A DNA stretch of 64,000 nt from Zygnema circumcarinatum SAG 698-1b (lineage: Eukaryota; Plantae; Zygnematophyceae): contig CM074806.1 of the NCBI GenBank assembly GCA_037447605.1, positions 1,116,001-1,180,000 of the forward strand, written 5' to 3'. The notes under the pieces are model-generated. The model saw only the letters and a program-made list of their open reading frames with translations. It ran no database searches and was not told the origin of the DNA. The translations under genes and the position numbers were made by a program. Shown here piece after piece: positions 20,011-52,168 of the stretch (position 1 is its first letter; every line of letters begins with the position of its first letter).

Positions 20011-20133
20011 CCCTAGTCCCTGTTCCCCCCTAAACCATAAACCCTCACCAAACCCTCAACCCTCAACCGCCTAAACCTTAAACCCTAATTCCTGAACCCT
20101 GAACCCCCTAAACCTAAACCTTCAACCCTGAAA
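20011..20133. repeat. Degenerate plant telomere-like tract (CCCTAAA variants), interstitial
   Basis: Run of CCCTAAA, CCATAAA, CCCTCAA, CCTTAAA, CCCTAAT, CCCTGAA, CCTAAA heptamer variants. Confidence 0.7.
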
Positions 20134-21508
20134 CGATTTTATTCAGTTGAACCAAGCACGGTAATACTGAATCGAACTGAGCACAATAATATTGAACTGA
20201 ACCGAGCACGATAGTATTGAATTGAACGGAGTACAATAATATTGAAATGAACCGAGCACAATAATATTGAATTGAACCGAGCACGATAAATATTGAATTG
20301 AACCGAGCCCGATAATATTGAATCGAACCGAGCACAATAATATCGAACCGAACTGAGCACGATAGTATTGAATTGAACCGAACACAATAATATTGAATTA
20401 AACCAAGTACGATAATTAAATTGAACCGAGCACGATAGTATTGAATCCGACCGAGCACAATAATATTGAATTGCACTGAGCACGATAGTATTGAACTGAA
20501 CCGAGCACAATAATATTGAATTGAACCAAGCACGATAATTGAGATGAACCGAGCACGATAGTACTGAATTGAACTGAGCATAATAATATTGAATTGAACC
20601 GAGCACGATAGTACTGAATCGAACTGAGCACAATAATATTGAATTGAACCGAGCACGCTTTAATTGAATTGAACCGAGCATGATAGTATTGAATTGAACC
20701 GATCACGATAATATTGAATTGAGCCGAGCACGATAGTATTGAATCGAACAGAGCACAATAATATTGAATTGAAACGAGCACGATAATTGAATTGAACCGA
20801 GCACGATAGTATTGAATCGAACCGAGCACAATATTATTGAATTGAACCGAGCACGGTAATACTGACTCGAACTGAACACAATAATATTGAATTGAACTGA
20901 GCACAATAATATTGAGTTGAACCGAGCACGATAGTATTGAATTAAACAGAGCACGATAGTATTGAATTGAACCGAGCACAATAATATTGAACTGAACCGA
21001 GCACGATAATTGAATTGGACCGAGCACGATAGTATTGTATCGAACCGAGCACGATAATATTATATTGAGCCGAGCACGATAATATTGAATCGAACTGAGC
21101 ACAATAGTATTGACTTGAACCGGCACAATAATATTATATTGAACCGAGCACGATTGTATTGAACCGAACTGAGCACGATAGTGTTTAATCGAACCGAGCA
21201 GAATAATATTGAACTGAACCGAGCACGATAGTACTGAATCGCGATAGTTCAACTGAACTGAGCACAATAATATTGAATTGAACCGAGCACGATAGTACTG
21301 AATCGCGATAGTTCAATTGAACCGAGCACAATAATATTGAATTGAACCGAGCACGATAGTATTGAATCGAACGGAGCACAATAATATTGAATTGAACTGA
21401 GCACGATAATATTGAATTGAACCGAGCACGATAATATTGAATCGAACTGAGCACAATAATATTGAATTGAACCGAGCACGATTTTATTGAATTGAACTGA
21501 GCACGATA
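20134..21508. repeat. 25-bp minisatellite, consensus ATTGAATTGAACCGAGCACGATA(A/G)T, roughly 55 copies
   Basis: Directly visible tandem units; followed by (GAT)/(ATT) simple repeats to ~21590. Confidence 0.95.
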
Positions 21509-28453: not shown

Positions 28454-31400
28454 TCATAGGCGGTAGAGGGGCGTGATGCCCAGTAGGCTAAAGCACTGCC
28501 TCATCACTGTGGCAGTGGCTTCACACAGCAGCAGACGGCTCGCTTCCTCCTCGCTTCCCACCACCTGCCATCATTGGAAGCAGCAACTCTTTCTGTTACG
28601 ATTACAAGAAGACCCAAAAAACAAAACTCTCGAAAACTGCTTTTTTCGGAGCAAAAAATTCCATTGCTCAACAGCCAGTGACTCACCTGGCAGTTGGTGT
28701 AAAATGTGGTGAAGGTTTGCGAAAGGTTATACAAATATTCGCACAAGGTGTTCGGCAACAAGTCTCCTATAGCAGCTTCTACAACCTGCAAAAAACAACA
28801 GAATGTCAGGTTTTTTAGCTTAAACATAACTTGGAGGATAATCCAAGCTCATGGTAGTTTCAAGTTTTCAACCCTAAAACATTACCTCAGGGAAGCGAAC
28901 AAGGTCAATGGCCAAAGCCCGCTCGCTTGGATGCTGCAGTTGAATAACACCGCCCGCAGCAGCAGCCTGCACATGCTCCCATTGGTTTCCGTTCCGTCAG
29001 CTTCTCTGCAAGTTTCCTTATGACCCAATAAGCATGGAAGAGAGGTCGATAAGCGAGACTACCTTTTTAAGTTCCTCAATGTCTCGGTCGGACTTCCGAA
29101 TAATGGAGCAGATGCGCGCATGCGCGTAGAGAAGATAGACAGCTGTGTTCCCCTGCAGCCATGCACATGGATTCAGGCCATGGCAGTATGAAGGCAGAGC
29201 CATAAAAGACCAATGGCAGCAGGAATTTTTTTGAGATTTGAGCAGACATAAGCGGGCGTATCTTACTCTCATATCCAGCATCTGTTCAAAGTCAAATGTG
29301 TAATTGGTCAAACGGTTGTTCTTCAAATCTGCATACCTGCATTAGGAACAGAGCTCAATCAGCAATGTGCTGCTTACATCCGACGAAATAACATCAAGGG
29401 CATGGCATACTCAAGGGTGCATTTATCCTCGACTGCACTATGGGAACATATGTATCACTCACTTGACTGCACCATAGCCTAATGCTGCAGCTGCATGATT
29501 GATCTCCTCCTCTGTCCACTCCCCTTCTCGCCCTGCATAGGGTCCCCCTCAAGTACATAGATCAGCCTTCATGTCAGCGATAAAGAAGAAAGTGAGAGAG
29601 AGCAAGAGAAACACCGAAAATTCTCAAAAAACTCTTTCGTACAGGCCTGAGACTTCACCTCTCTCAACAAGGCCCTGTCGGCTGCGAGCAACTGCCTCAT
29701 CTAGGAGGTCAACAAGTCGAACAACTTCTGAACTCCGAGTTCGGAACCGTTTTCCGTCAGTGCCCAAAACGAGCCCAAAACCAACATGGCTAAGCTTGGG
29801 GTAGCTTCCGTCTCTCTTATGAAATCCTGCAAGTTCTGCAGCCTGTCCACGAGAAGTATACCCTCCTTGAAAGTTAGATTAGTCAAATAGCTGAACATGC
29901 TGTCAGGTGTTACTTCCATCAATGAATCAGAATAAGGACAAGGAATAATTGATATTGAACAGCTTAGAAGAATTTAGATAAGAAATACACGAAATTTGAG
30001 GCCGATTCACATGACGAAGGATTTTACCTCGAAGATCATTGAGAAGTGTTCCGATTGGCCCACGTCTGTTACATAGACGATCCACTCACCCTTTTCTACA
30101 TTGGTCCGATACCTGCAATGATCATTTCTTGTCAGCATTCAGTCGTCTCTCTGCCATATCTATGCTTTCAGCAAACCACGAGGAGAACGAGAGAGGAGGA
30201 TTTTGAGGTCACCAGGCACAAGCCATATCTGTAGTCGCATAGTTGAAGCCTCCATCAGACTTAATCAATATCAAAGGCAGTCCACGCTCATCCGTTTCCA
30301 CCTCCTCCATTTGCTGACCCGGACCGATTTCATCATCTAAGTCCGCGCCATCTTCCTTCATTTGCACTTTCTCTTGCGCTTTGGGCTGACTCTTCTCCTC
30401 CTTCTGATTGCCTTTCTCCTTCTTCCCGTCCTTCTTTCCTTCCTTCTTCACTTTCTTCTTGCTGGGCAAAAATATGCAACGCGCTCCCCTGCTATCCTCT
30501 ACCAGCTCTTTCTCCTCAAGCATCTTCACAACGTCGGGAATGTATGGATTGTAGAAGCTCTCCCCCTGTACCATACACAGTTAGGCTCCTTTCCCTCCGA
30601 TTCAACTCATAGCTTGAGGGGGTTTACTAGTGCAGACTTTTTCAAACAAGGGAGTCTATATGCTATGCAAAACGAAACCAACAGAGTCTTTTTCCAAGAT
30701 TGAAAAGGAAAAAAATGCACCAATTTACGGCAGCTTTATAAATCTGAAAACGAATTCCACTCTCCCTTCCTCCGTCCAAAGCTCTACTTACTCTTTCCTC
30801 AAGTCGAACCTCTAGTCGTTCATAGACCATCTGAAACTCACGCCGGCTCACGTCACAGATTCGCGCCCATGCCGCTCGGTACTTTTCCTCACCTCCCTGC
30901 CACTCTCTCGAGTTCGGAAAAGTCAAACAAAGAAGGCAAAGGCTGTGTCCTATAAGTTTCTGAAATGCCGATACTCTTTCAACACCCAGTGAAGAGCTGG
31001 TAAAAGACGACAGCTGTCCTTTTCCTGTTGCCCTCAGACCACTCCTGAGAATAGTACGGTTCTTACCTGCAGCTTCACCACTGCCTTCTGAGCCCTTTCT
31101 TTAAACTCCGGCTCAGAATCAAATCGCACCTTGGCCGCCTTGTAGAAGGCCTGCACACATGTAACAGCTGCTCTGGCACAGTCTCAGTTGTATGCTCAAC
31201 CTAAGTTTTCCCATTCAAACATGTCACCAACCAGAACCTGGGAACAAGATTGGAAGGTTTCCATGCTAAAAATTCAATGTACTTCTGCTGAAAGCGGAAA
31301 GCGCATGGGCACGAGAAGAAGGTGCTGTAATCTCCAGAAACGTCTGAAAGATGTATGCCGAAAGAGAGTAAAGCAGTGTACTACATGCAAACAGTATTGC

Positions 31401-33294: not shown

Positions 33295-33544
33295 GGATGG
33301 GCGGAAGCTCTCTGAGGAAAGACGCAGCTTGAGGAAACCCGCCCCCTCACTCTCTCTACCGGAAACGGAGCTGCGGTGCCGTCAGTCGCTCACTAGGGCT
33401 GGGGGAGGCGCTGCGCTTGAGCTGCTTCTGTTCGCTGTCGGTAGTCCAGTTGGAGTCAACAGGACAGGACTGAACCTCCAGCCCTCACGTGCATGTGCCC
33501 ATGTGCATGCATTCATGGGTCCTTTGAGTGCATGCACAAACATT

Positions 33545-33765
33545 GCTTGCGATTTGCAAACCATTGATTCTGGATCCAACCAAATTGGATCCAATGGTTG
33601 CAGTAATTGACAATGGTTGGACGAGTTAGCCAGCCAATGGATGGTTGCAACCATAAGCAATGGTTGGGTGGGTCGAGAATCAATGGTCCAATGGTTGCAG
33701 TCATTTGCAATGGTTGGCTAGGCCACCAGCCAATGGTTTGGTTGCAAGCATTGGCAATGTGAGGT
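33545..33765. repeat. CAATGGTTG-motif array, copy 1
   Basis: At least seven CAATGG(N)TTG motifs; begins TTGCGATTTGCAAACCATTGATTCT, identical to the start of copy 2 at 37249. Confidence 0.8.
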
Positions 33766-33766
33766 G

Positions 33767-35388
33767 TTTCGCGAATCGATCATGATCCAATGGTTGCATA
33801 AGCTCCAAGTCAACGAGCGGCTTTCACTCCAGTCACACACAGTCCAGTCAGTTCACTCCAATCGTGAATTTTCTTTCATCAAATTGACTGGCCGCAGACT
33901 ACCTTTCGCCCTTCCAATAGAACCGGCTCAGGGAGAAAGGCTTCTTCTGCATGGGGAGGGGAGAAGAACAGTAAAAACTATGGGCAAAAACACATTTCAC
34001 GTTCAAGAAGGTTTTAACTTTTACACACTTTTCGGAACAAGGACAGGACAAGATCTGGCTGGCAAAACGAGCATGAACATACCAAAAAGGTGCTGCAAAA
34101 AAATCGACAGTGAGCCATACAACATGAAAAACACTTCTGTTCTTATGAAAGAAACAAAATTGAGGATAACACTAATAGACCAACGCGGCGACTGCAAAAT
34201 ATTTCTTGCGAGCGCTTTATTAAAATCTCATTTAAAAAAAAAAAAAAATGAAAAATGCTACGTGAGGCTCAACTACAATTTCAGTTCTAGTTTCAGTTCC
34301 ATTTCAGTTTGGTCAATCAGGATGGTGATTTTTTTGCTCCAACATTTATTATGTTGGCAGTTTCCATCGCTACTCCTCAGTTTCAAGTCTATTTGAAGAG
34401 TGTAACTGAACATGGAACTGGTTGGAGGACCAGCATGTTTCATATTTCATTTTTTTTTTTTTTTAAATGAGATTTCAATAAAGTGCTCGCAAGAAATATT
34501 TTGCAGTCGCCGCATTGGTCTATCAGTGTTATCCTCAATTTTGTTTCTTTCATAAGAACAGAAGTGTTTTTCTTGTTGTATGGCTCACTGTCGATTTTTT
34601 ACAGCACCTTTTTGGTAAATTCATGCTGGTTTTGCCAGCCAGATCTTGTCCTGTCCTTGTTCCGAAAAGTGTGTAAAAGTTAAAACCTTCTTGAACGTGA
34701 AATGTGTTTTTGCCCATAATTTGTACTGCTCTTCTCCCCTCCCCATGCAGAAGAAGCCTTTCAGCTTCTCCCTGAATCGATTTTAGTGGAAAGGGGAAAG
34801 AAAGTCTGCAGGCAATCAGTTCGAGAAAGAAAATCCACGACTCGAGTGAAAGTCGAAAATCCACGACTCGAGTGAAAGTCGCTCGCTGACTTAGAGCTTA
34901 TGTAGCGAAACGCTATACATGTGTTGTACGGCCTAGTACTTACATCCGCGGTTGCCTTTTAATGGTAAAGCACTTAGGTGGTTACTGGGAGGTCCTGTGT
35001 TCGAACCCTGCTTGGGGCGGGTTTGTTACATTGGTATCAGAGCCTAATTCCCGGTATTTGCGATCCACCCTAAAAACACCGTGATCTCCGAGCATGGTAC
35101 TGTTGGCCAGAGGGTCTGAACCGTACAGAGGGGGCATGTGTTGAAGGAGCTTGAATGCAGCTCGTGAAAACCCTTGAGCTGTGTGCTCGAGGACGAGCAC
35201 GGTTTAGGTGGGGAGGAATGTAGCGAAACGCTATACATGTGTTGTACGGCCTGGTACTTACATCCGCGGTTGCCTTTTAATGGTAAAGCACTTAGGTGGG
35301 TACCGGGAGGTCCTGTGTTCGAACCCTGCCAGGGGCGGGTTTGTTACAGCTTATGCAACCATTGGATCATTGATTGATTAGCGAAAAA
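33767..35388. repeat. Long palindrome P1: ~490-bp imperfect arms around a 176-bp core; right arm interrupted by a TRIM
   Basis: 33975-34257 is the reverse complement of ~34434-34720; outer ends GATCCAATGGTTGCATAAGCTC and GAGCTTA|TRIM|GCTTATGCAACCATTGGATC; core 34258-34433. Confidence 0.85.
34901..35348 (+). mobile_element. Complete TRIM (448 bp) with tRNA-like LTRs
   Basis: 130-bp LTRs 34901-35030 and 35219-35348 (TG...CA, 5 mismatches), PBS TGGTATCAGAGCC (initiator-Met type) at 35032, PPT AGGTGGGGAGGAA at 35206-35218, 5-bp TSD GCTTA on both sides. Confidence 0.95.
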
Positions 35389-35488
35389 TGATTACTCGCA
35401 AAAAATTGCCAAGGGGGGGGTGGGGGGAAGAATCGGGTGAGGGAAGTGGGGAATTAAAGGGCCTTTGGATGGATACAAGAGAGGAGTT

Positions 35489-36109
35489 GTCGCTCATGAT
35501 TTGAGAGTTCATTGCACACGAAGGAAATTGAAAGCAACGAGGATCAATCTCAATCTCATGCCTGTAGCTCTGATGTGGAGGGCCGAAACATAGGTCCCAT
35601 CCATCCAAAGCATAAGGGATTGGTGAAGGATGGTCGTAGCCTCAAGTGTCATCTCTGTCCTTGACAATTTGTAGCAATGGTTGAGTCAATGGTTGAGTCA
35701 AAGTTCTTTTTTTATTCGGTGTCTACGTGAGCCTCAATTGCAGTTTCAGTTTTAGTTTCAATTCCATTTCAATTTGGTCAACTAAGATAGTGATTTTTTG
35801 CTCCAACATTTATTATGTTTGCAGTTTCCATCGTTACTCCTCATGTTCAAAGTCTATTTGAAGAGTGTAACTGAACATGGAATTGGTTGGCTGACCAGAA
35901 TAAAAAAAGAACCTTAACTCAACCATTGCTATAAAATTGTCAAGGACAAAGATGACACTTGAGGCTACGACCATCCTTCAAAAATCCCCTATGCCTTAGA
36001 TGGATAGAACCTATGTTTCGGCCCTCCACATGAGAGCTACAGGCACGAGATTGAGCCTCGTTCCCTTCAATTTCCTTCGTGTGCAATGAACTCTCAAACC
36101 ATGAGCGAC
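35489..36109. repeat. Long palindrome P2: ~220-bp arms around a second copy of the 176-bp core
   Basis: GTCGCTCATGATTTGAGAGTTCATTGCACACGAAGG... pairs with ...CCTTCGTGTGCAATGAACTCTCAAACCATGAGCGAC; core 35723-35898. Confidence 0.85.
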
Positions 36110-36113
36110 AGCC

Positions 36114-36620
36114 GATAAATTATTTGTCGCGTGCATTGCTTGCTTTCATGTTTTGTTTTTTTGAATTTTTGGTTGTCCTTTTCCTTATTGATGGTCAACC
36201 GTGTATGGGAACAACCACACTATTATGTACAAAATCGACATAGGCAGTACAAGACACCGTATCTCGGCAAAACGAGTAGGCGAGGAGGTCTCTGGCCTCA
36301 GCTCAGGAGGAAATCCTACAAGAGTACAAATAATGAATCAAAGTTCTCACCTTCGCCACATGGGCGTGCTCTATGTAGAGCGCATCGCGCCATTTGCAAA
36401 GTTTGTCTTGTAGTGCTGAAACTATTGTTAGAGACCTCCTCGCCTGCTCATTTTGTCGAGATACGGTGTCTTGTACTTTCAAACTGCTGCCTATGTCAAT
36501 TTTGTACATAATAGCGTGGTTGTTCCCATACATGGTTGATCATCAATAAGGAAAAGGACAACCAAAAATTCAAAAAAACAGAACAAGACAGCAAGCAATG
36601 CACGTGACGAATAATTTATC
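36114..36620. repeat. Long palindrome P3: ~180-bp arms, unrelated ~140-bp loop
   Basis: GATAAATTATTTGTCGCGTGCATTGCTTGC... pairs with ...GCAAGCAATGCACGTGACGAATAATTTATC; inner arm ends GGCGAGGAGGTCTCT and AGAGACCTCCTCGCC. Confidence 0.85.
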
Positions 36621-37242
36621 AGCAATTGCTTGTCAATTGTCCTTCGACAAGTGACAATTGCTCACACGTACCTTTCCCTCGAGAAATGGCACTCTTTCCT
36701 GGAGAACCTTGATCCCACGCCGCAAGATTGGGACCTCTGCAGATTCCATAATATCCGTAAACGCTCCACTGTTTGCTGCTACACGACCCCGCTCCTCATC
36801 CAATCCATGAAGGCTTGGGGTGTCCTGCGGCAGCGATTGACGTGGGGCAAAAAAGAAGGAACGAAACGCCTGCATGGCCGCCTGAGGAGAAACACGCCTG
36901 CGCCTGCGAAAAAATATAGTCTTCTGCGGAATACAGTGCACTGAAGCGCCTCGCCTCTCCCCACCCTCTCCAAGCCTCAGCTCCCTTCCCAGCAAAGAAA
37001 GTGAACAGCAAGCCACCTTGCCTGCTCTGAAAAAGGGCAGGACCGACGAACCGTACGGTCCGTGCATTGCATTTCGTACAGTCCTTTGTGGACCCGGTTA
37101 TTCGGCGGGCCGCGCGCCTACTGTACCTCATCTTCAACTGTGGATAGGACTGTACGGATACACAGGTGCCGCCACCGCCGTGGAGGAATGGTTGCGTACG
37201 GTGCGCGGTACGTGACGTGACGTGGCTAGTGGCTAATCCCCT

Positions 37243-37364
37243 TGATGGTTGCGATTTGCAAACCATTGATTCTCAATCCAACCAACCATTGGATCCAATG
37301 GTTGAACTCATTGACAATGGTTGGCTGGGTAGCTTTCCAATGGTTGCAAACATTGGCAATCGAG
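37243..37364. repeat. CAATGGTTG-motif array, copy 2 (shorter direct repeat of 33545-33765)
   Basis: Shared start and shared end (CAA(A/G)CATTGGCAAT) with copy 1. Confidence 0.8.
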
Positions 37365-37799: not shown

Positions 37800-39255
37800 A
37801 TTAGAATGCACCACGTGGCCACTTTTAACACGCTGCGACACATACCCTATTTACAACAATACGTCCCGTAAAACATTCAAAACGAACGCTGTCGTACATA
37901 GAAAACGACACGTGGCAATGACAGAATGGGAGCGCGATATACCCCTTTTTCTGCGCATTCGATCCAACGAAACGCACAACCAATCAGGACGCGCGACGTG
38001 GCAACGTCAGACTCGTGGCAACTATACCCCATTTTCATTAGGGTAGTGATATTTCCACCCCTTTTTTGGATCCAAACACCCCTTCCCGGCCGGGCAGAGT
38101 TCAAAAGGGATTAAAAACAGAAAATGCTTTTTTCACACCTTTTTGGAATCGATACCCACCTTCTTCCGTCGGCTGATTTTATTTTTGCTAACCAAGGAAA
38201 ATGATACCCCGTCATCGCATTTTGAATACTGTATCCCGCCTGCCTGAATTTTTTTTTTGCGGGAAAGAAATATCTGCCTGCCCGAATCCGCTCGGAGCGG
38301 CAGATTCGTCCACCACGTAATGTGTGTCAATCGCAGCTGTCGATTCCCTCGCAAGATCACACCACTGCAGATCACCGTTCGATCTGCAGCCGGGCTCGAT
38401 CTTAGCGAATGGAAAGCGCCCACGAGTCCCGCCAAAGCCGGATCGCACGTGCGAGTGCGCGCGTCCCTCGGCCCGAGATCTCGTCATTGTTAGCTCTCAG
38501 CCAATCAACATCTGCCACGTGTTTAATTTTCGACGTGGAAAATTTTGATTGGTTTAAGATCTCAATGTACGATTTTTTGGGTTCCTCAAGTTCGACCGTA
38601 CGACATTTGTACGGACAAACGTTTGAGAGGACTTTTGGCGGGATACGTCGGCTCGTGCCATGCGCTGTGACCGAGCCCGGCTGCAGATCAAATAGTGATC
38701 TGCCGTGTTGCGATCTGCGAGGGAATCGACGGCTGCGATTGACCGCACGCGTGAAAAAAAATTCAGGTAGGCGGGATATTCAAATGGGGTGACGGGTTAT
38801 CATTTTCCTTGTTTCGCAGAAATAAAATCTGCCGATGGAGGGTGGTATCGATTCCAAAAAGGTGTGAAGAAAGCATTTTCCGTTTTTAATCCTTTTTGAA
38901 CTCTGCCCGGCCGGGAAGGGGTGTTTGGATCCAAAAAAGGGGTGGAAATATCACTACCCTTTCATTAAATCCATCTTTGACAACCTAACCGAATCCGTAC
39001 GCCACATAAAACATCAAAATCGAACGTTGTCGTACGTAGAAAACGACCCGTGGCAATGACAGAATGGGAACGCGATATACCCCATTTTCTGTGCATTCGA
39101 TCCAACGAAACGCACAACCAATCAGCACGCGCGACGTGGCAACGTCAGACTCGCGGCAACTATACCCCATTTTCATTAAATTAATCTTTGACAACATAAT
39201 CGAAGCCGTCGTACGGATCAAAACGATGACTAAGCTTTTGCCTACGGCAACGCAA
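37800..39255. repeat. ~515-bp dispersed repeat containing two ~190-bp subunits, copy 1, split by a MITE
   Basis: AATGCACCACGTGGCCACTTT...GCTTTTGCCTACGGCAACGCAAAAA recurs uninterrupted at 50170-50685. Confidence 0.8.
38041..38959. mobile_element. Foldback MITE with very long TIRs (GGGTAGTGATATTTCCACCCC...), Mutator- or hAT-like, copy 1
   Basis: Termini GGGTAGTG...CACTACCC; 8-bp TSD TTTCATTA; empty-site equivalent (CCCCATTTTCATTAAA) visible in the neighbouring subunit at ~39165; no ORF. Confidence 0.9.
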
Positions 39256-42457: not shown

Positions 42458-45400
42458 TGTTGGAGCATGGATCTGCTCGCTGCTCCCGGCGCCACCTCGC
42501 GTGTCGCCCTCCATTGGAACTCCGGTTCCCACCGATGAAGACATCTTCACTCTCTCTCACTCTATCTCACTTCACTCATAGCCCATAACTCACAGAATGA
42601 ACGCAGAGACGAGCACAGCGGAAATCACACACGAGAGAGTATAGGAGAAAGCTCACGGCTCTAAAACTCCTTTATAATAAGAATGTCACCCACATGAAGT
42701 TCTCCCCCTCTCACTAGCTACTTCTCCCCTTACTCACTACCTTGCGACACAAGCAGGGCAGCCCAGCAACACGAGCAGGCACAGAATAAGTCACGGGAAT
42801 ACAGTAGTCTAATGTGGTTATCCTTCATAACAAAGCTAAACCCTATATACCGCCATGGCCGTGTTACGTGACATCTTCCTTGTTGACCGATGTCACGTCA
42901 CGGCCGCCCTCATGCGTTCAGCAGCCAGGTACGCGTTCAACAGCCAGCATTGCGGTCTTTCGTAAACCTACGCCAGTACCGACCTAGTCAGGTCGTCCGT
43001 ACAGTTCCGCCGCCCATCCGAGCTCGTTGTCCGTCCGAGCGCGAATCTTCCGCCGCCCGTCCGTACGCGTCCGCCGCCCGCGCGCGCATGTTCGATTCGC
43101 GCGCGCCGTACACATTCGCGCCGTCCGCGACAAAAAACTCCGTCGTCGCATTTCCGCGCCGTTCACATCTGTCCACGTGGCTGCTGACTCGGTCCCCTTC
43201 GCAGTTGACCTCGTCAGAGTCCGCGGACCGCACTAAGGGTCTGACGCGGTTTCGCCGACATCACCGACATCCTCCGCGCCCGAAAAGCGTACGGGCCACC
43301 GACATTTGGCCCGACCATATTCCCTAGGACACCTACTAGCAGATCTCATGTTTCCCAACTGAGGACCACAACAATGTTAGTGTGAACCCATACTATGTCT
43401 AACTATAGCACACTAACACTAACAATCCCCCTCTTGGGACTCAGTTCCTCATGGGCCCTAGCCCAATGAGTCTGCTATTCACTAGTAGCGTCTCACCACT
43501 AACTCCCTTAGTCAACATATCCGCAGCCTGCTCCTTCGTCCCCACGAACTTCACAACAATCATCCCCTCCTCTACTAATTCTCGCACATAATGGTATTGT
43601 ACTCTAATGTGCTTTGTCCTCTTATGAAACACAGGGTTTTCAACAAGAGCTATGGACGACTGATTATCCGTGAACAAAGTCAAGGGACGTTGTGGCCTCT
43701 TACACTCATCAAAGAAATGTTGGAACCAAACTCCCTCCTTCGCTGCGTGACATGCTCCCATGTACTCGCCTTCGGTGCTAGACAACGCAACCGAATCCTG
43801 TAGCTTCGAGCTCCATGAGATCGCTCCACCTGCGTTCAGGTAAACAAATCCGGAGGTCGTGTTGTACGGGACTAGAGGCCGTACAACGTTTGGCGTGTAG
43901 TCTCTAGCGGATAATGAACTAGACGCGAACATGAAGCGACAAGGCTGGTCGCGCGACCAATGTGACGCGATAAGTTCTGGGACCGTGACATGACGAAACG
44001 GAGTATCGGCGCGCCCGGGGCGACGCGACGATATGTCGCGCGGACGACACTTTTCGGTCGCACAGACGCAGGCGCGCGCGCGGGCNNNNNNNNNNACAAG
44101 CCGGTCCACAGGACGCTGTCACGTAGCTTAGTCGTAGGAAGTATATAGAGAGTAGCATTCCTCAGAGTAACTAACCTCATACCACATGCCAATGGGGGTG
44201 TGTAGCGAGTTGAGGCCGAGCCTGTAGTTAAGAAGAGGAGTAGTGCTGCCAGTCTTGGGAAAAAGAGAGTGGGGTAGTGCAAGCTGCATTAAGCGGCCAG
44301 GGGCTGCTTGAATCTGTTGTACTTCACCTCCAAAGAAAATCAGAGTTTTATGCCCGGTGGGGCTTTCTCTATCTTGACGTCTCTTGTCTTGCATCTGTCT
44401 TGAGCTTTCCTTTCGCGAACAGCTGCTGCGAAGATGTCTACGACTCAAGAGCCGAGTGGAGGCGACTCTGTCGAGGGTGGTTCCACCATGGAATTACCAA
44501 CAGGTCGATCGCGATGTGTCCACGTCACCTCCCCAGTCAGAGTCGGTGTATCCGATCACTCTGTTCGGCCCTCTCTCGTAACGAAGTCCGTACTCCAGGG
44601 TCCCCCGTACGAACCGAAAGATTCGCTTTACGGCCTCCCAATGCTCAGGGCCGGGATTCTCCATGAACCGACTTGCGGCGCTCACAGCCTTCGCCAAGTC
44701 CGGTCGGGTACCAATCATTAGGTACATTAAACTTCCGATAGCAGATCTGTACGGCACTCCGTACNNNNNNNNNNGTTGAAGAAAATTCCGGGAACAAATC
44801 CCGGAGGCATCCTTGCCCTCATCGCGTCTCTCTCGGCCATCTCCAAGTCCTCAGACTCCTGCCCGTGCAAAGGTACAGTTTCGACCGAGTCTTCCTCATC
44901 CGACAGGTGAGTGTGTAGTGGGGCCGTCTCCGTCGATTTCTCCGGCTCCCCCGCTTGCGGCACTTCGGGTTCGACTCCCGCCTCCGCCTCGACGTTCGGC
45001 ATTGCTCCCGAGTCAGCTCCTTCGCTCTCCGGCATGCTGATCTCCTCCAAAGCCGGGACCTGAGAGGCTTCAACGCCTTCTCCGCTGGTCTCCACGTCCT
45101 CATACACAATCTCCAATCCTGCCTTTTGGGGCTGGGTCTCACCTAGCCGTGTCACCGCCCCTTTCTCGTCCACCGTGATGTCCCTCGAGCTCTGCACTTC
45201 CTTCGCTCGCGGGTTCCAAATCCTGTAGGTGCGACTGTCCATGTTGTAGCGGTATATCCTTCAGCATTTCATGGTCAAGCTTCCTCTTGTCTCGCCGCGG
45301 CCTTTGTCGACCGGCGGCGCTCCGAAGCAACCAGTGGGAAACCGTGGGCTTTCTCCACTCCACACCTCCTCAGGAACCTGATCCTTGAGCACAGAAGATG

Positions 45401-48400
45401 GGCATCTATTCCTAAGGTAAGCTGCGGTCATCACCGCCTCTCCCCAGAAAGAAGCCGGGAAGGGGGAATCTATGAGCATGGTCCGCGCCATGTCCCCAAC
45501 GTCTGACCCACCCGCGCTACGGCGGCGGCTCCGTACTTTGGGGAGTAGGGAGGCAGAGAATTCATGCCTAATTCCACGAGTCTTGAGGTACTCGCCGAAC
45601 TCCTTCGACTTGAACTCCCCTTTGTTGTCCGAGCACAGAGTCTTCAGTTTCTGTCTGCTCTCTCGCTCCATCTGAGTCTGCCAATCTCTGAAGGCTTCTG
45701 AAAGCCTCAGACTTGTTCTTGAGAATTTTCACCCAAATTTTCCTGTCGAGAAATGTGATGAAGTACCGAGCTCCTCCACTCGTTGCCGGTGTCACGGGGC
45801 CACAAAGGTCGGTGTGAACCAACTCCAGTTTCTCCTGCGCATGGTACGCCTCCTCTCCACTCCTCGCGAATGGTTTCCGATGCGCCTTCCCCTCTACACA
45901 CTCCTTGCAAATACCGAGCTCCTTCTCCACGACATCTACATCTAACCCATGGACCAGCCCCTTAGCAGCAAGCTGTTGCAACCCTCGATGGTTAAGATGT
46001 CCAAGTCTACGATGCCAAAGATTTATGGCAGTTTTAGCCACAGCCATCACATCTTCATCCTCTGTCCTTCTATAATGAAGATAATACAGGCCTCCCTTCT
46101 CATATCCCTCAAACAGCCGCTTCCCCGTCACTGCGTGAGTAGCTACACAAAACTTCTCCTTGAACGTGATCTCGTACCCCCTCTTACACACCTGGCTAAC
46201 AGACATGAAGTTCTGTTTCAGCTCGGGGGTGTGGAGTACATCACCGATACACAAACGATCCTCCCTCTCCTCTTCGTAGATGACAGAGCCGTCTCCGAGA
46301 ATCATCTTGACTACTCCACCCTTCGTGACTGTCACTCCCTCTCCGGTTGCCGAGTGAACGGATCGAGTCCTCTCTAGCGTGTCCAGCGTGGAGAACATCT
46401 GCTTGTCGCCACACATGTGTGTGGAAGCGTCTGAATCGATCAACCACGGCCGCTTCAGATCCTAAACCTGGATCTTCCCAACAAAGTCAGAATTTTCGGG
46501 CCTTTCAGCCATCATCAGATTGGTCTCATTCGACCCTCTGCATTCGGTGCTCTTGTGACCTCACTTCTTGCACTTGAAGCAGATCCCCTTGAAGCCTTTC
46601 TTCTCCTTCTTGCCGAATGCCGGCGCACCTCCTCCTCCCCGATCTTAGGGACNNNNNNNNNNAGAGAATTCATGCCTAATTCCACGAGTCTTGAGGTACT
46701 CGCCGAACTCCTTCGACTTGAACTCCCCTTTGTTGTCCGAGCACAGAGTCTTCAGTTTCTGTCTGCTCTCTCGCTCCATCTGAGTCTGCCAATCTCTGAA
46801 GGCTTTTGAAAGCCTCAGACTTGTTCTTGAGAATTTTCACCCAAATTTTCCTGTCGAGAAATGTGATGAAGTACCGAGCTCCTCCACTCGTTGCCGGTGT
46901 CACGGGGCCACAAAGGTCGGTGTGAACCAACTCCAGTTTCTCCTGCGCATGGTACGCCTCCTCTCCACTCCTCGCGAATGGTTTCCGATGCGCCTTCCCC
47001 TCTACACACTCCTTGCAAATACCGAGCTCCTTCTCCACGACATCTACATCTAACCCATGGACCAGCCCCTTAGCAGCAAGCTGTTGCAACCCTCGATGGT
47101 TAAGATGTCCAAGTCTACGATGCCAAAGATTTATGGCAGTTTTAGCCACAGCCATCACATCTTCATCCTCTGTCCTTCTATAATGAAGATAATACAGGCC
47201 TCCCTTCTCATATCCCTCAAACAGCCGCTTCCCCGTCACTGCGTGAGTAGCTACACAAAACTTCTCCTTGAACGTGATCTCGTACCCCCTCTTACACACC
47301 TGGCTAACAGACATGAAGTTCTGTTTCAGCTCGGGGGTGTGGAGTACATCACCGATACACAAACGATCCTCCCTCTCCTCTTCGTAGATGACAGAGCCGT
47401 CTCCGAGAATCATCTTGACTACTCCACCCTTCGTGACTGTCACTCCCTCTCCGGTTGCCGAGTGAACGGATCGAGTCCTCTCTAGCGTGTCCAGCGTGGA
47501 GAACATCTGCTTGTCGCCACACATGTGTGTGGAAGCGTCTGAATCGATCAACCACGGCCGCTTCAGATCCTAAACCTGGATCTTCCCAACAAAGTCAGAA
47601 TTTTCGGGCCTTTCAGCCATCATCAGATTGGTCTCATTCGACCCTCTGCATTCGGTGCTCTTGTGACCTCACTTCTTGCACTTGAAGCAGATCCCCTTGA
47701 AGCCTTTCTTCTCCTTCTTGCCGAATGCCGGCGCACCTCCTCCTCCCCGATCTTAGGGACNNNNNNNNNNCTTCTTGCACTTGAAGCAGATCCCCTTGAA
47801 GCCTTTCTTCTCCTTCTTGCCGAATGCCGGCGCGCCTCCTCCTCCCCGATCTTGGGGACTCTTGTTCGCCCCTTAGCGATGCACGCGGTAGTGGCGATCT
47901 TGCCACCGCGTGTAACGCTCAGCAGTCGTTCTCTCGGTCGACCCGGCGCACCTCCTCGCCGGTCTTATGGTAGTCACGGCGCTAGCACCTTCTCCTCGGT
48001 GCTCCCGGTGTCTTGGACGGTGTCCTCCTCCTTGATCCTCCGCTTCACTTGCTCAAGGGTCATTTTAGGAGTTCGTTAGGGCAGGTCCTAGCGGCTACTT
48101 GTGCTACATCAAATCAGAGGTCAATCCCCTAGGCGTGATCGCATGGTCACTCTCTAGCGGTTTACTGGCCAGAGCTATGAACCTCTCCATCAAGGTATCA
48201 GAAGCGACCATATATTCACTGTTTCTCATCAGTCATCTTCATCTTCCCAAGCTGCGTGTAAAGACTCACTATCGTAACGTTATCCTTTACATCATACATC
48301 TCTTCTAAGCACCTCCACATGGCATGTGAGGTCTTGAGATCATACAGCATGGACGAAGGACTTCCCCTCACACTCATGGCGTCTGGGTGGCGCTTTGTTG

Positions 48401-50806: not shown

Positions 50807-52168
50807 GGGGGAGTCAGACCTTGTCCATCGCCAAACCAATTCCGCGAGCCCGTCGGGCCAATTCCGCGTTGTACGGCAGGCCTTTTCCGCCAAAAGTGGA
50901 CGTTCGACAGGCTCGGGCGCCGCGAATTCAAGAGAGCAATTATTTTAGGGTAGTGATATTTCCACCCCTTTTTTGGATCCAAACACCCCTTCCCGGCCGG
51001 GCAGATTTCAAAAAGGATTAAAAACGGAAAATGCTTTTTTCACACCTTTTTGGAATCGATACCCACCCTCCATCGGCAGATTGTATTTTTGCGAAACAAA
51101 GAAAATAATAACCCGTCACTCCATTTGAATATCCCGCCTACGTGATTTTTTTTTTTCGCGTGCGGTCAATCGCAGCCGTCGATTCCCTCGCAGATCGCAA
51201 CGAGGCAGATCACTATTTGATCTGCAGCCGGGCTCGGTCAGAGCGAATGGCACGGGCCCACGTATCCCGCCAAAGTCGTCTCAAAAATTGTCCGTACACA
51301 TGTGGTACGGTCGTACCAAAATTTTTGTACATTGAGAGTTTGGACCAATCAAAAATTTCCACGTCAGAAATTTAACACGTGGTAAATGTTGATTGGCTGG
51401 GAGCTGACAGTAGAACAAGATCTCGGGCCGAGGTACGCGCGCACTCGCACGTGCGATCCGGCTTTGACGGGACTCGTGGGCGCTTTCCATTCGCTGAGAT
51501 CAAGCCCGGCTGCAGATCGAACGGTGATCTGCAGTGGTAAGATCTGCGAGGGAATCGACAGCTGCGATTGACAAACACGTGTGAAGGACTGACACCCGCG
51601 AACGATCTCGTGCCGGACGGATCTTCCGCCCCGAGCGGATTCGGGCAGGCAGATATTTCTTTCCCTCAAAAATAAAATTCAGGGAGGCGGGATACAGTAT
51701 TCAAAATGCGGTGACGGGGTATCATTTTCCCTGGTTAGCAAAAATAAAATCAGCCGACGGAAGAAGGTGGGTATCGATTCCAAAAAGGTGTGAAAAAAGC
51801 ATTTTCCTTTTTTAATCCCTTTTGAAAGCTGCCCGGCCGGGAAGGGGTGTTTGGATCCAAAAAAGGGGTGGAAATATCACTACCCTTATTTTACCTTTGT
51901 ATCACCGGGCCAGGTTTGACTCCCCCCTTTTCACCCCCCCGCGCTCCCTCCGCCGCCCGCCGCCCGCCGCCCTCCGTTTTGTCGCCACGCGCGCCTCACA
52001 CTTGCGAGAGGCGCTCGCACGTGCGTGACGCGCATGGCGACAAGGCGGGGCACGATTCCTCATCGGGGGGAGCCGTGGTTTCCGACCCGAATTCGGAAAT
52101 CGAAATCAATACCTTTCCGCCGGCGAAATCTTTCAATTCCGCGGGCGATGGTCAAGGTCTGACTCCCC
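50807..52168. mobile_element. GGGGGAGTCAGAC-ended TIR element, TA-flanked, carrying a nested MITE
   Basis: TA|GGGGGAGTCAGACCTTGTCCATCGCC at 50807 and GGCGATGGTCAAGGTCTGACTCCCCC|TA ending 52168; extra internal end-like motif at ~51907-51926. Confidence 0.75.
50948..51885. mobile_element. Foldback MITE, copy 2, opposite orientation to 38041-38959
   Basis: Same GGGTAGTG...CACTACCC termini; 8-bp TSD TTATTTTA. Confidence 0.9.

Follow-up and report, generated by a model that had tools for sequence, protein, structure and literature searches.

A shared 176-bp core at the centre of two palindromes with unrelated arms in nuclear DNA of the green alga Zygnema

We analyzed a stretch of nuclear DNA from the streptophyte green alga Zygnema, referred to here as the window, which is 64 kb long, has a GC content of 49% and contains few long open reading frames (ORFs). 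No tRNA genes were found in the 64-kb window, and searching it with Rfam gave no match at the gathering threshold. An exon of arginyl-tRNA synthetase is located on the minus strand at 30209–30574 and a copia-type retroelement occupies approximately 43.4–47.5 kb. Between them are three palindromes that lack target-site duplications (TSDs), lie within 2.9 kb, and include two that abut. Palindrome 1 extends from 33751 to 35412 once a 448-bp LTR element has been taken out of its right arm, a G-rich spacer at 35413–35487 separates it from palindrome 2 at 35488–36110, and palindrome 3 follows directly at 36111–36623. The three palindromes are bracketed by two arrays of CAATGGTTG / CCAAT type. The left array (33544–33805, plus strand) consists of units of about 47–50 bp, with its last 55 nt inside the left arm of palindrome 1, and the right array (37246–37364, plus strand) is a direct repeat of it, with 82% identity over 120 nt. 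Exact CAATGGTTG sites occur 14 times in the 64 kb, where 0.8 would be expected, and every one of them is found in a 3.8-kb block at 33592–37346.

Palindromes 1 and 2 carry the same unit at their centers. The first copy of this core is at 34258–34433 on the plus strand and is a non-coding 176-bp sequence with 40% GC that starts CTAC-GTGAG and ends CAG. The second, at 35723–35898, is a 176-bp unit in the same orientation, about 1.3–1.46 kb from the first. A blastn alignment of the two showed 88.7% identity over 177 columns, with 18 substitutions (13 transitions and 5 transversions) and two 1-nt gaps. The similarity starts with CTACGTGAG and ends with GACCAG in both copies and is gone within 0–3 nt outside these points on either side. 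At all four junctions the border of core similarity coincides with the border of arm pairing to within 0–5 nt. Because the four homology borders are also the four arm borders, we consider the core to be a discrete unit that is causally tied to the dyad. No third copy was detected in the 64-kb window, either with blastn at a word size of 7 or with nhmmer --max, where the next match had E = 0.13. A search of metagenome contigs with an exact 20-mer of the core returned three matches, which we attribute to chance because identity was limited to about 20–24 nt in each, the only further similarity being one weak 48-nt stretch at 77%; viral contigs gave no match to an exact 22-mer.

The left arm of palindrome 1 (33751–34257, plus strand) is contiguous with the left array. 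The right arm is read on the minus strand and is split by the LTR element into an inner part at 34434–34900 and an outer part at 35354–35412, the latter repeating the end of the array in inverted orientation, with a 23-nt pair of 100% complementarity, and stopping abruptly at a G-run. Given that the array runs on into the left arm and that the right arm breaks off at the G-run, we take the left arm as the original and the right arm as its copy. Thus for palindrome 1 one arm continues into its original flank and the other ends at a breakpoint. On either side the pairing of the arms reaches right up to the core with no base left over, and a 7-nt stutter, CATGTTT followed by CATATTT, lies in the right arm where it adjoins the core. 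An A15 and a T15 tract adjoin the core within 10 nt. Folding of palindrome 1 with the LTR element removed predicted a single hairpin of −784 kcal/mol, as compared to −288 kcal/mol for shuffled sequences, with TTATT of the core as the only terminal loop, at position 595–600 of 1209 nt.

Divergence between the arms of palindrome 1 is 9.9% overall and is unevenly distributed: the 330 bp nearest the core differ by 4%, the adjoining 100 bp by 28% and the sequence beyond by 7%. Put as identity, this is a mosaic of about 96% at 33929–34257, 72% at 33829–33928 and 93% at 33784–33828, and either patchy gene conversion or a history of two steps is needed to account for it. The right arm alone carries an exact 26-bp tandem duplication (34829–34880), which falls inside the 100-bp block of 72% identity. 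We considered whether a younger inner foldback might start with CAGGGA at 33923, and rejected this candidate since the 8-bp TSD that it would require agrees in no more than 5 of 8 positions, a level of agreement that the palindromic context by itself provides. One ORF, of 210 aa (33764–34396) and one of the six longest of the window, crosses from the palindrome 1 left arm to the core. It showed no relatives by Pfam or by word search and is probably a chance ORF because a frameshift disrupts the corresponding frame of the other arm; Pfam applied to eight ORFs of the arms and flanks gave nothing credible.

The insertion that splits the right arm of palindrome 1 was identified as a miniature LTR retroelement of 448 bp (34901–35348, plus strand) with TG...CA ends. 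Its 131-bp LTRs are 96% identical (3.8% divergence), it is flanked by a 5-bp TSD, GCTTA, at 34896–34900 and 35349–35353, and it has a tRNA-Met-type primer-binding site, TGGTATCAGAGC, at 35032. A tRNA-like stretch is also present in the LTRs, but ARAGORN does not recognize it as a tRNA.

Palindrome 2 has a left arm at 35488–35722 (plus strand), in which a 12-bp tandem duplication holds two CAATGGTTG copies, and a right arm at 35899–36110 (minus strand). The arms are 92.4% identical (7.6% divergence). At the junction with the core five bases, GGTGT (35718–35722), are unpaired on the left side only, and a T7 and an A7 tract adjoin the core within 10 nt. Palindrome 3 has arms of 92.9% identity (7.1% divergence) around a 136-nt loop that is unrelated to the core and is not self-complementary.

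We compared the arms of palindromes 1 and 2 with each other and obtained Smith-Waterman scores of 17–18, as against means of 17–19 for shuffled sequences (z about 0), with the score coming from the 9-mer CAATGGTTG alone. Each outer arm of palindrome 1 has one copy of this motif, and the inner arms of palindrome 2 have three in all. Neither palindrome's arms recur elsewhere in the 64-kb window. A systematic scan found no TSD at palindromes 1, 2 or 3, and the same scan recovers the 8-bp TSDs of a control foldback family elsewhere in the window. Based on the continuity with the array, the absence of TSDs and the absence of other copies in the window, we conclude from the sequence that the arms are, in all probability, local DNA duplicated in place and not the arms of an imported transposon.

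A preliminary description of this locus had reported two closely similar 176-bp cores, each at the apex of a long inverted repeat, with A/T tracts beside both, arms in which a single shared motif was the only similarity noticed, and no TSD at either palindrome. Our analysis agrees on each of these points, with both cores within 0–5 nt of the center of their palindromes, and the TSD result applies to the cores as well. The same description correctly recognized palindrome 1 as a long inverted repeat, though its extent proved to be larger after removal of the LTR element.

The core itself shows self-complementarity over nearly its full length, with z = 2.6 for copy 1 and z = 3.1 for copy 2; shuffled sequences reached the score in 4 of 200 and 2 of 200 cases, respectively. 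The pairing is weak, at present about 60%, and most of the mismatches are common to both cores, indicating that they are older than the split of the copies. A central mini-hairpin at 34339–34357, with a 7-bp stem and a TTATT loop, is offset from the arms' dyad axis by no more than about 2.5 nt. The ends of the core pair only loosely, with the outermost two bases at each end (CT...AG) being complementary. We read the core as a worn, weak concentric palindrome that is likely to be a discrete self-pairing unit. Only one compensatory pair was found between the two cores, which is about chance level and gives no sign of a selected structure. Stop codons interrupt all six frames of the core, the longest open stretch being about 45 codons, and a word-based protein search with a 56-aa core ORF found no relatives. 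Rfam covariance models run against the core gave nothing at or near any gathering threshold.

The core was also compared with the known classes of small mobile element. A scan that demanded a 9-of-12 terminal match and a flanking direct repeat found neither a TSD nor a clean terminal inverted repeat (TIR) at either copy, and a cut-and-paste MITE was rejected because no candidate combining TIR and TSD emerged. Helitrons are recognized by a 5' TC, a 3' CTRR end and insertion between A and T. The core was rejected as a Helitron because its ends read CT...CCAG and CTGG...GTAG on the two strands and its flanks are not A and T. A SINE or poly(A) retroposon was likewise rejected, given how the core ends, which way the A/T tracts are oriented and that no TSD is present; a reading of the two arrays as LTRs failed for the same three reasons. 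Both cores read CTAC|GTGAG...CAG| at their borders, which are intron-like GT...AG borders, and a pyrimidine tract is absent.

For comparison, the window contains a foldback-type transposon family with two copies, at 38041–38959 and 50948–51885, which are 88% identical and in opposite orientation. Its termini are GGGTAGTG, and its loops of about 190 nt carry a CCAAT box and an ACGTG box in convergent orientation. The two copies have perfect 8-bp TSDs, TTTCATTA and TTATTTTA, and their arm divergence is similar to that of the palindromes. Foldback transposons and MITEs resemble the palindromes described here in being non-coding, about 0.6–1.2 kb long, and built of long inverted arms around a loop of 140–200 nt. 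However, members of such a family share their arms and have TSDs, whereas palindromes 1 and 2 have the loop in common, unrelated arms and no TSD.

Our tentatively preferred explanation, which takes in the observed geometry, the sharpness of the borders, arms of local origin and missing TSDs, is that the core is a discrete self-pairing unit: when a break occurs at its border, it would fold back on itself and prime the copying of its own flank. The core would have been present twice at the locus, and at each copy the DNA of one side would have been mirror-copied in place onto the other. The process would begin with a break or a free 3' end at a core border, after which the single strand would fold on the weak stem of the core and bring the 3' end against the opposite flank. 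Fill-in synthesis would then copy that flank for 0.2–0.5 kb, and the extended end would be rejoined to the chromosome, leaving a long hairpin palindrome with the core as its loop and whatever adjoined the core as its arms. Because the arms in this model can be any DNA that adjoins the core, the loops would match and the arms would differ. How the DNA broke, was primed by folding back and was rejoined, and in which order, we infer from two copies that lie about 1.3 kb apart.

The mechanism is established in its general form: an interrupted inverted repeat with a nearby break leads to an inverted duplication centered on the repeat (PMC3315005, PMC10622511), and replication template switching is known to make hairpins de novo (PMC10710096). 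Such fold-back-primed inverted duplications share with our locus a small interrupted palindrome at the exact center of the mirrored flank, the lack of TSDs, and arms that consist of local DNA (PMC3315005, PMC10622511). A short interrupted inverted repeat is likewise present at the dyad center, as a 7-bp-stem hairpin within a core that is self-complementary as a whole (z = 2.6–3.1) and concentric with the arms. The published cases differ in being chromosome-scale and in ending hairpin-capped or dicentric (PMC3315005, PMC10622511), whereas here the arms are 0.2–0.5 kb, interstitial and old, and the same repeated unit has been used twice. Since the published mechanism yields large terminal or dicentric products, the short interstitial products seen here require an extra rejoining step, which we assume. 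The 7-nt stutter in palindrome 1 and the 5-nt offset in palindrome 2 are as expected of primed synthesis or end joining. On the other side, the weak self-pairing of the core, at about 60%, and the small number of copies, two at a distance of 1.3 kb, which give no sign of dispersal or of a general association, count against fold-back seeding, and a one-step origin fits the mosaic of palindrome 1 only with later patchy gene conversion, which also counts against the explanation we prefer.

Among the three roles that had been put forward for the core in the preliminary description, the triggering of inverted duplication of its flank gives the best fit, with arms that are local, TSDs that are missing and CT...AG ends that can pair. 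A second role, that of a mobile unit which targets cruciform tips, survives in part. Insertion by an ordinary transposase is unlikely because there is neither a TSD nor a clean TIR, and what is left is capture of the core at a broken tip. This is the main rival to fold-back priming, and we regard it as unlikely. It holds that spacerless, AT-rich palindromes extruded as cruciforms or hairpins were cut at their tips and that the same piece of DNA, for example an excised small transposon, was trapped in both by end joining. Breakage at the center of AT-rich palindromes is an established phenomenon, A/T tracts stand beside both cores, the ends of the core are exact and lack a TSD, as would be the case for an excised element ligated into a break, and the junctions have small irregularities, all of which speak for capture. 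It would need two perfect palindromes and a third source copy, however, and neither was seen. Palindrome 3, the only palindrome at the locus that lacks the core, has a spacer of 136 nt in place of a perfect center. This shows that palindromes here form around a spacer of similar size, and nothing suggests that they started as perfect palindromes, so that palindrome 3 with its own spacer counts against capture. Both cores, moreover, are at tips and no ordinary insertion of the core lies within the 64 kb. Additionally, repair of a tip usually trims the arms asymmetrically, and here the arms pair up to the core.

Another account, which seems to us distinctly unlikely, is a single complex replication accident in which serial template switching made both cores and all three palindromes, or in which one loop was copied into the tip of its neighbor. 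The crowding of three TSD-less palindromes into 2.9 kb, two of them abutting, would be natural for such an accident, as would the similar divergences of 7.1–10.3% across the cores and the three palindromes and the common orientation of the cores at a distance of 1.46 kb. Random switches would not, however, be expected to reuse both borders of the core to the base, and no arm sequence was carried along with the core. Template-switch hairpins (PMC10710096) likewise arise by copying local sequence as its reverse complement and form a long foldable hairpin locus, but such events usually involve tens of bases and are not tied to a recurrent central unit, unlike the palindromes described here.

The third role in the preliminary description, a cis site used by several foldback families, is disfavored because the palindromes have no TSDs and their arms are found nowhere else in the window. 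In its general form this account would have two foldback transposon families, or a chimera between families, that share an internal loop as a cis site or cargo and were inserted whole, and we consider it quite improbable. The genome is rich in foldback elements, and this very window has one family represented twice, with loops of about 190 nt. Those copies have perfect 8-bp TSDs, in contrast to the palindromes, and insertion of whole elements fits neither with a left arm of palindrome 1 that carries on the local array nor with arms that have no other copy in the window. Lastly, an artefact of assembly or library preparation, in which a fold-back chimeric read with an adapter-like center would account for the same center between unrelated inverted arms, the typical shape of such chimeras, is scarcely credible, given that the cores differ by 11%, mostly through transitions, that the arms differ by 4–28%, mostly through substitutions, that one arm alone holds both an exact 26-bp tandem duplication and an LTR element that has a TSD of its own and LTRs that have diverged, and that the nearest N-runs are about 8 kb away.

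Long hairpin loci, which are sources of siRNAs and of young miRNAs, are usually ascribed to an unspecified "inverted duplication". The inverted-duplication model for the origin of hairpin-RNA and miRNA genes, including Mu killer, resembles fold-back priming at the core in that a local sequence is copied as its reverse complement to form a hairpin locus, but it is not linked to a unit that recurs at the center. A recurrent unit at the dyad of unrelated local palindromes would give inverted duplication a concrete sequence cause. A bolder version of fold-back priming, which we think improbable, is that the core is a small mobile "hairpin-maker" whose end cleavage and self-priming turn adjoining host DNA into a long inverted repeat. 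If this were true, it would create new hairpin-RNA (siRNA) loci from arbitrary DNA. If, on the other hand, the core has only two adjacent copies genome-wide, the finding would amount to one complex local rearrangement.

The arrangement also recalls the intron-spliced hairpin RNA constructs used in silencing, in which different arms are placed around one common GT...AG spacer. Like them, the palindromes have differing arms and a common spacer that begins GT and ends AG. If a mobile hairpin-maker were real, these borders might allow the loop to be spliced out, by analogy with the engineered constructs. Those constructs are man-made, whereas the copies here are 11% diverged and have received later insertions.

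Ranked by divergence, the cores come first at 10.3%, followed by the arms of palindrome 1 (9.9%), palindrome 2 (7.6%) and palindrome 3 (7.1%), with the LTRs of the inserted element last at 3.8%; these values do not give the order of the events.

Two further regions of the window stand out. Within the copia-type retroelement, two 291-aa ORFs lie 1.1 kb apart on the minus strand at 45568–47551, each overlapping a 142-aa ORF on the plus strand; the ORF at 45568–46443, which was the one of the two that was scanned, contains copia-type Gag-pre-integrase domains. The N-runs of the window are confined to this retroelement, as four 10-N runs from 44086 to 47770, and because these runs interrupt the region the assembly at 45568–47551 is uncertain. 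Elsewhere in the window, a degenerate interstitial telomere-like run of CCCTAAA at 20028–20134 adjoins a 25-bp satellite of approximately 56 copies at 20133–21508, where the GC content dips to 39%.
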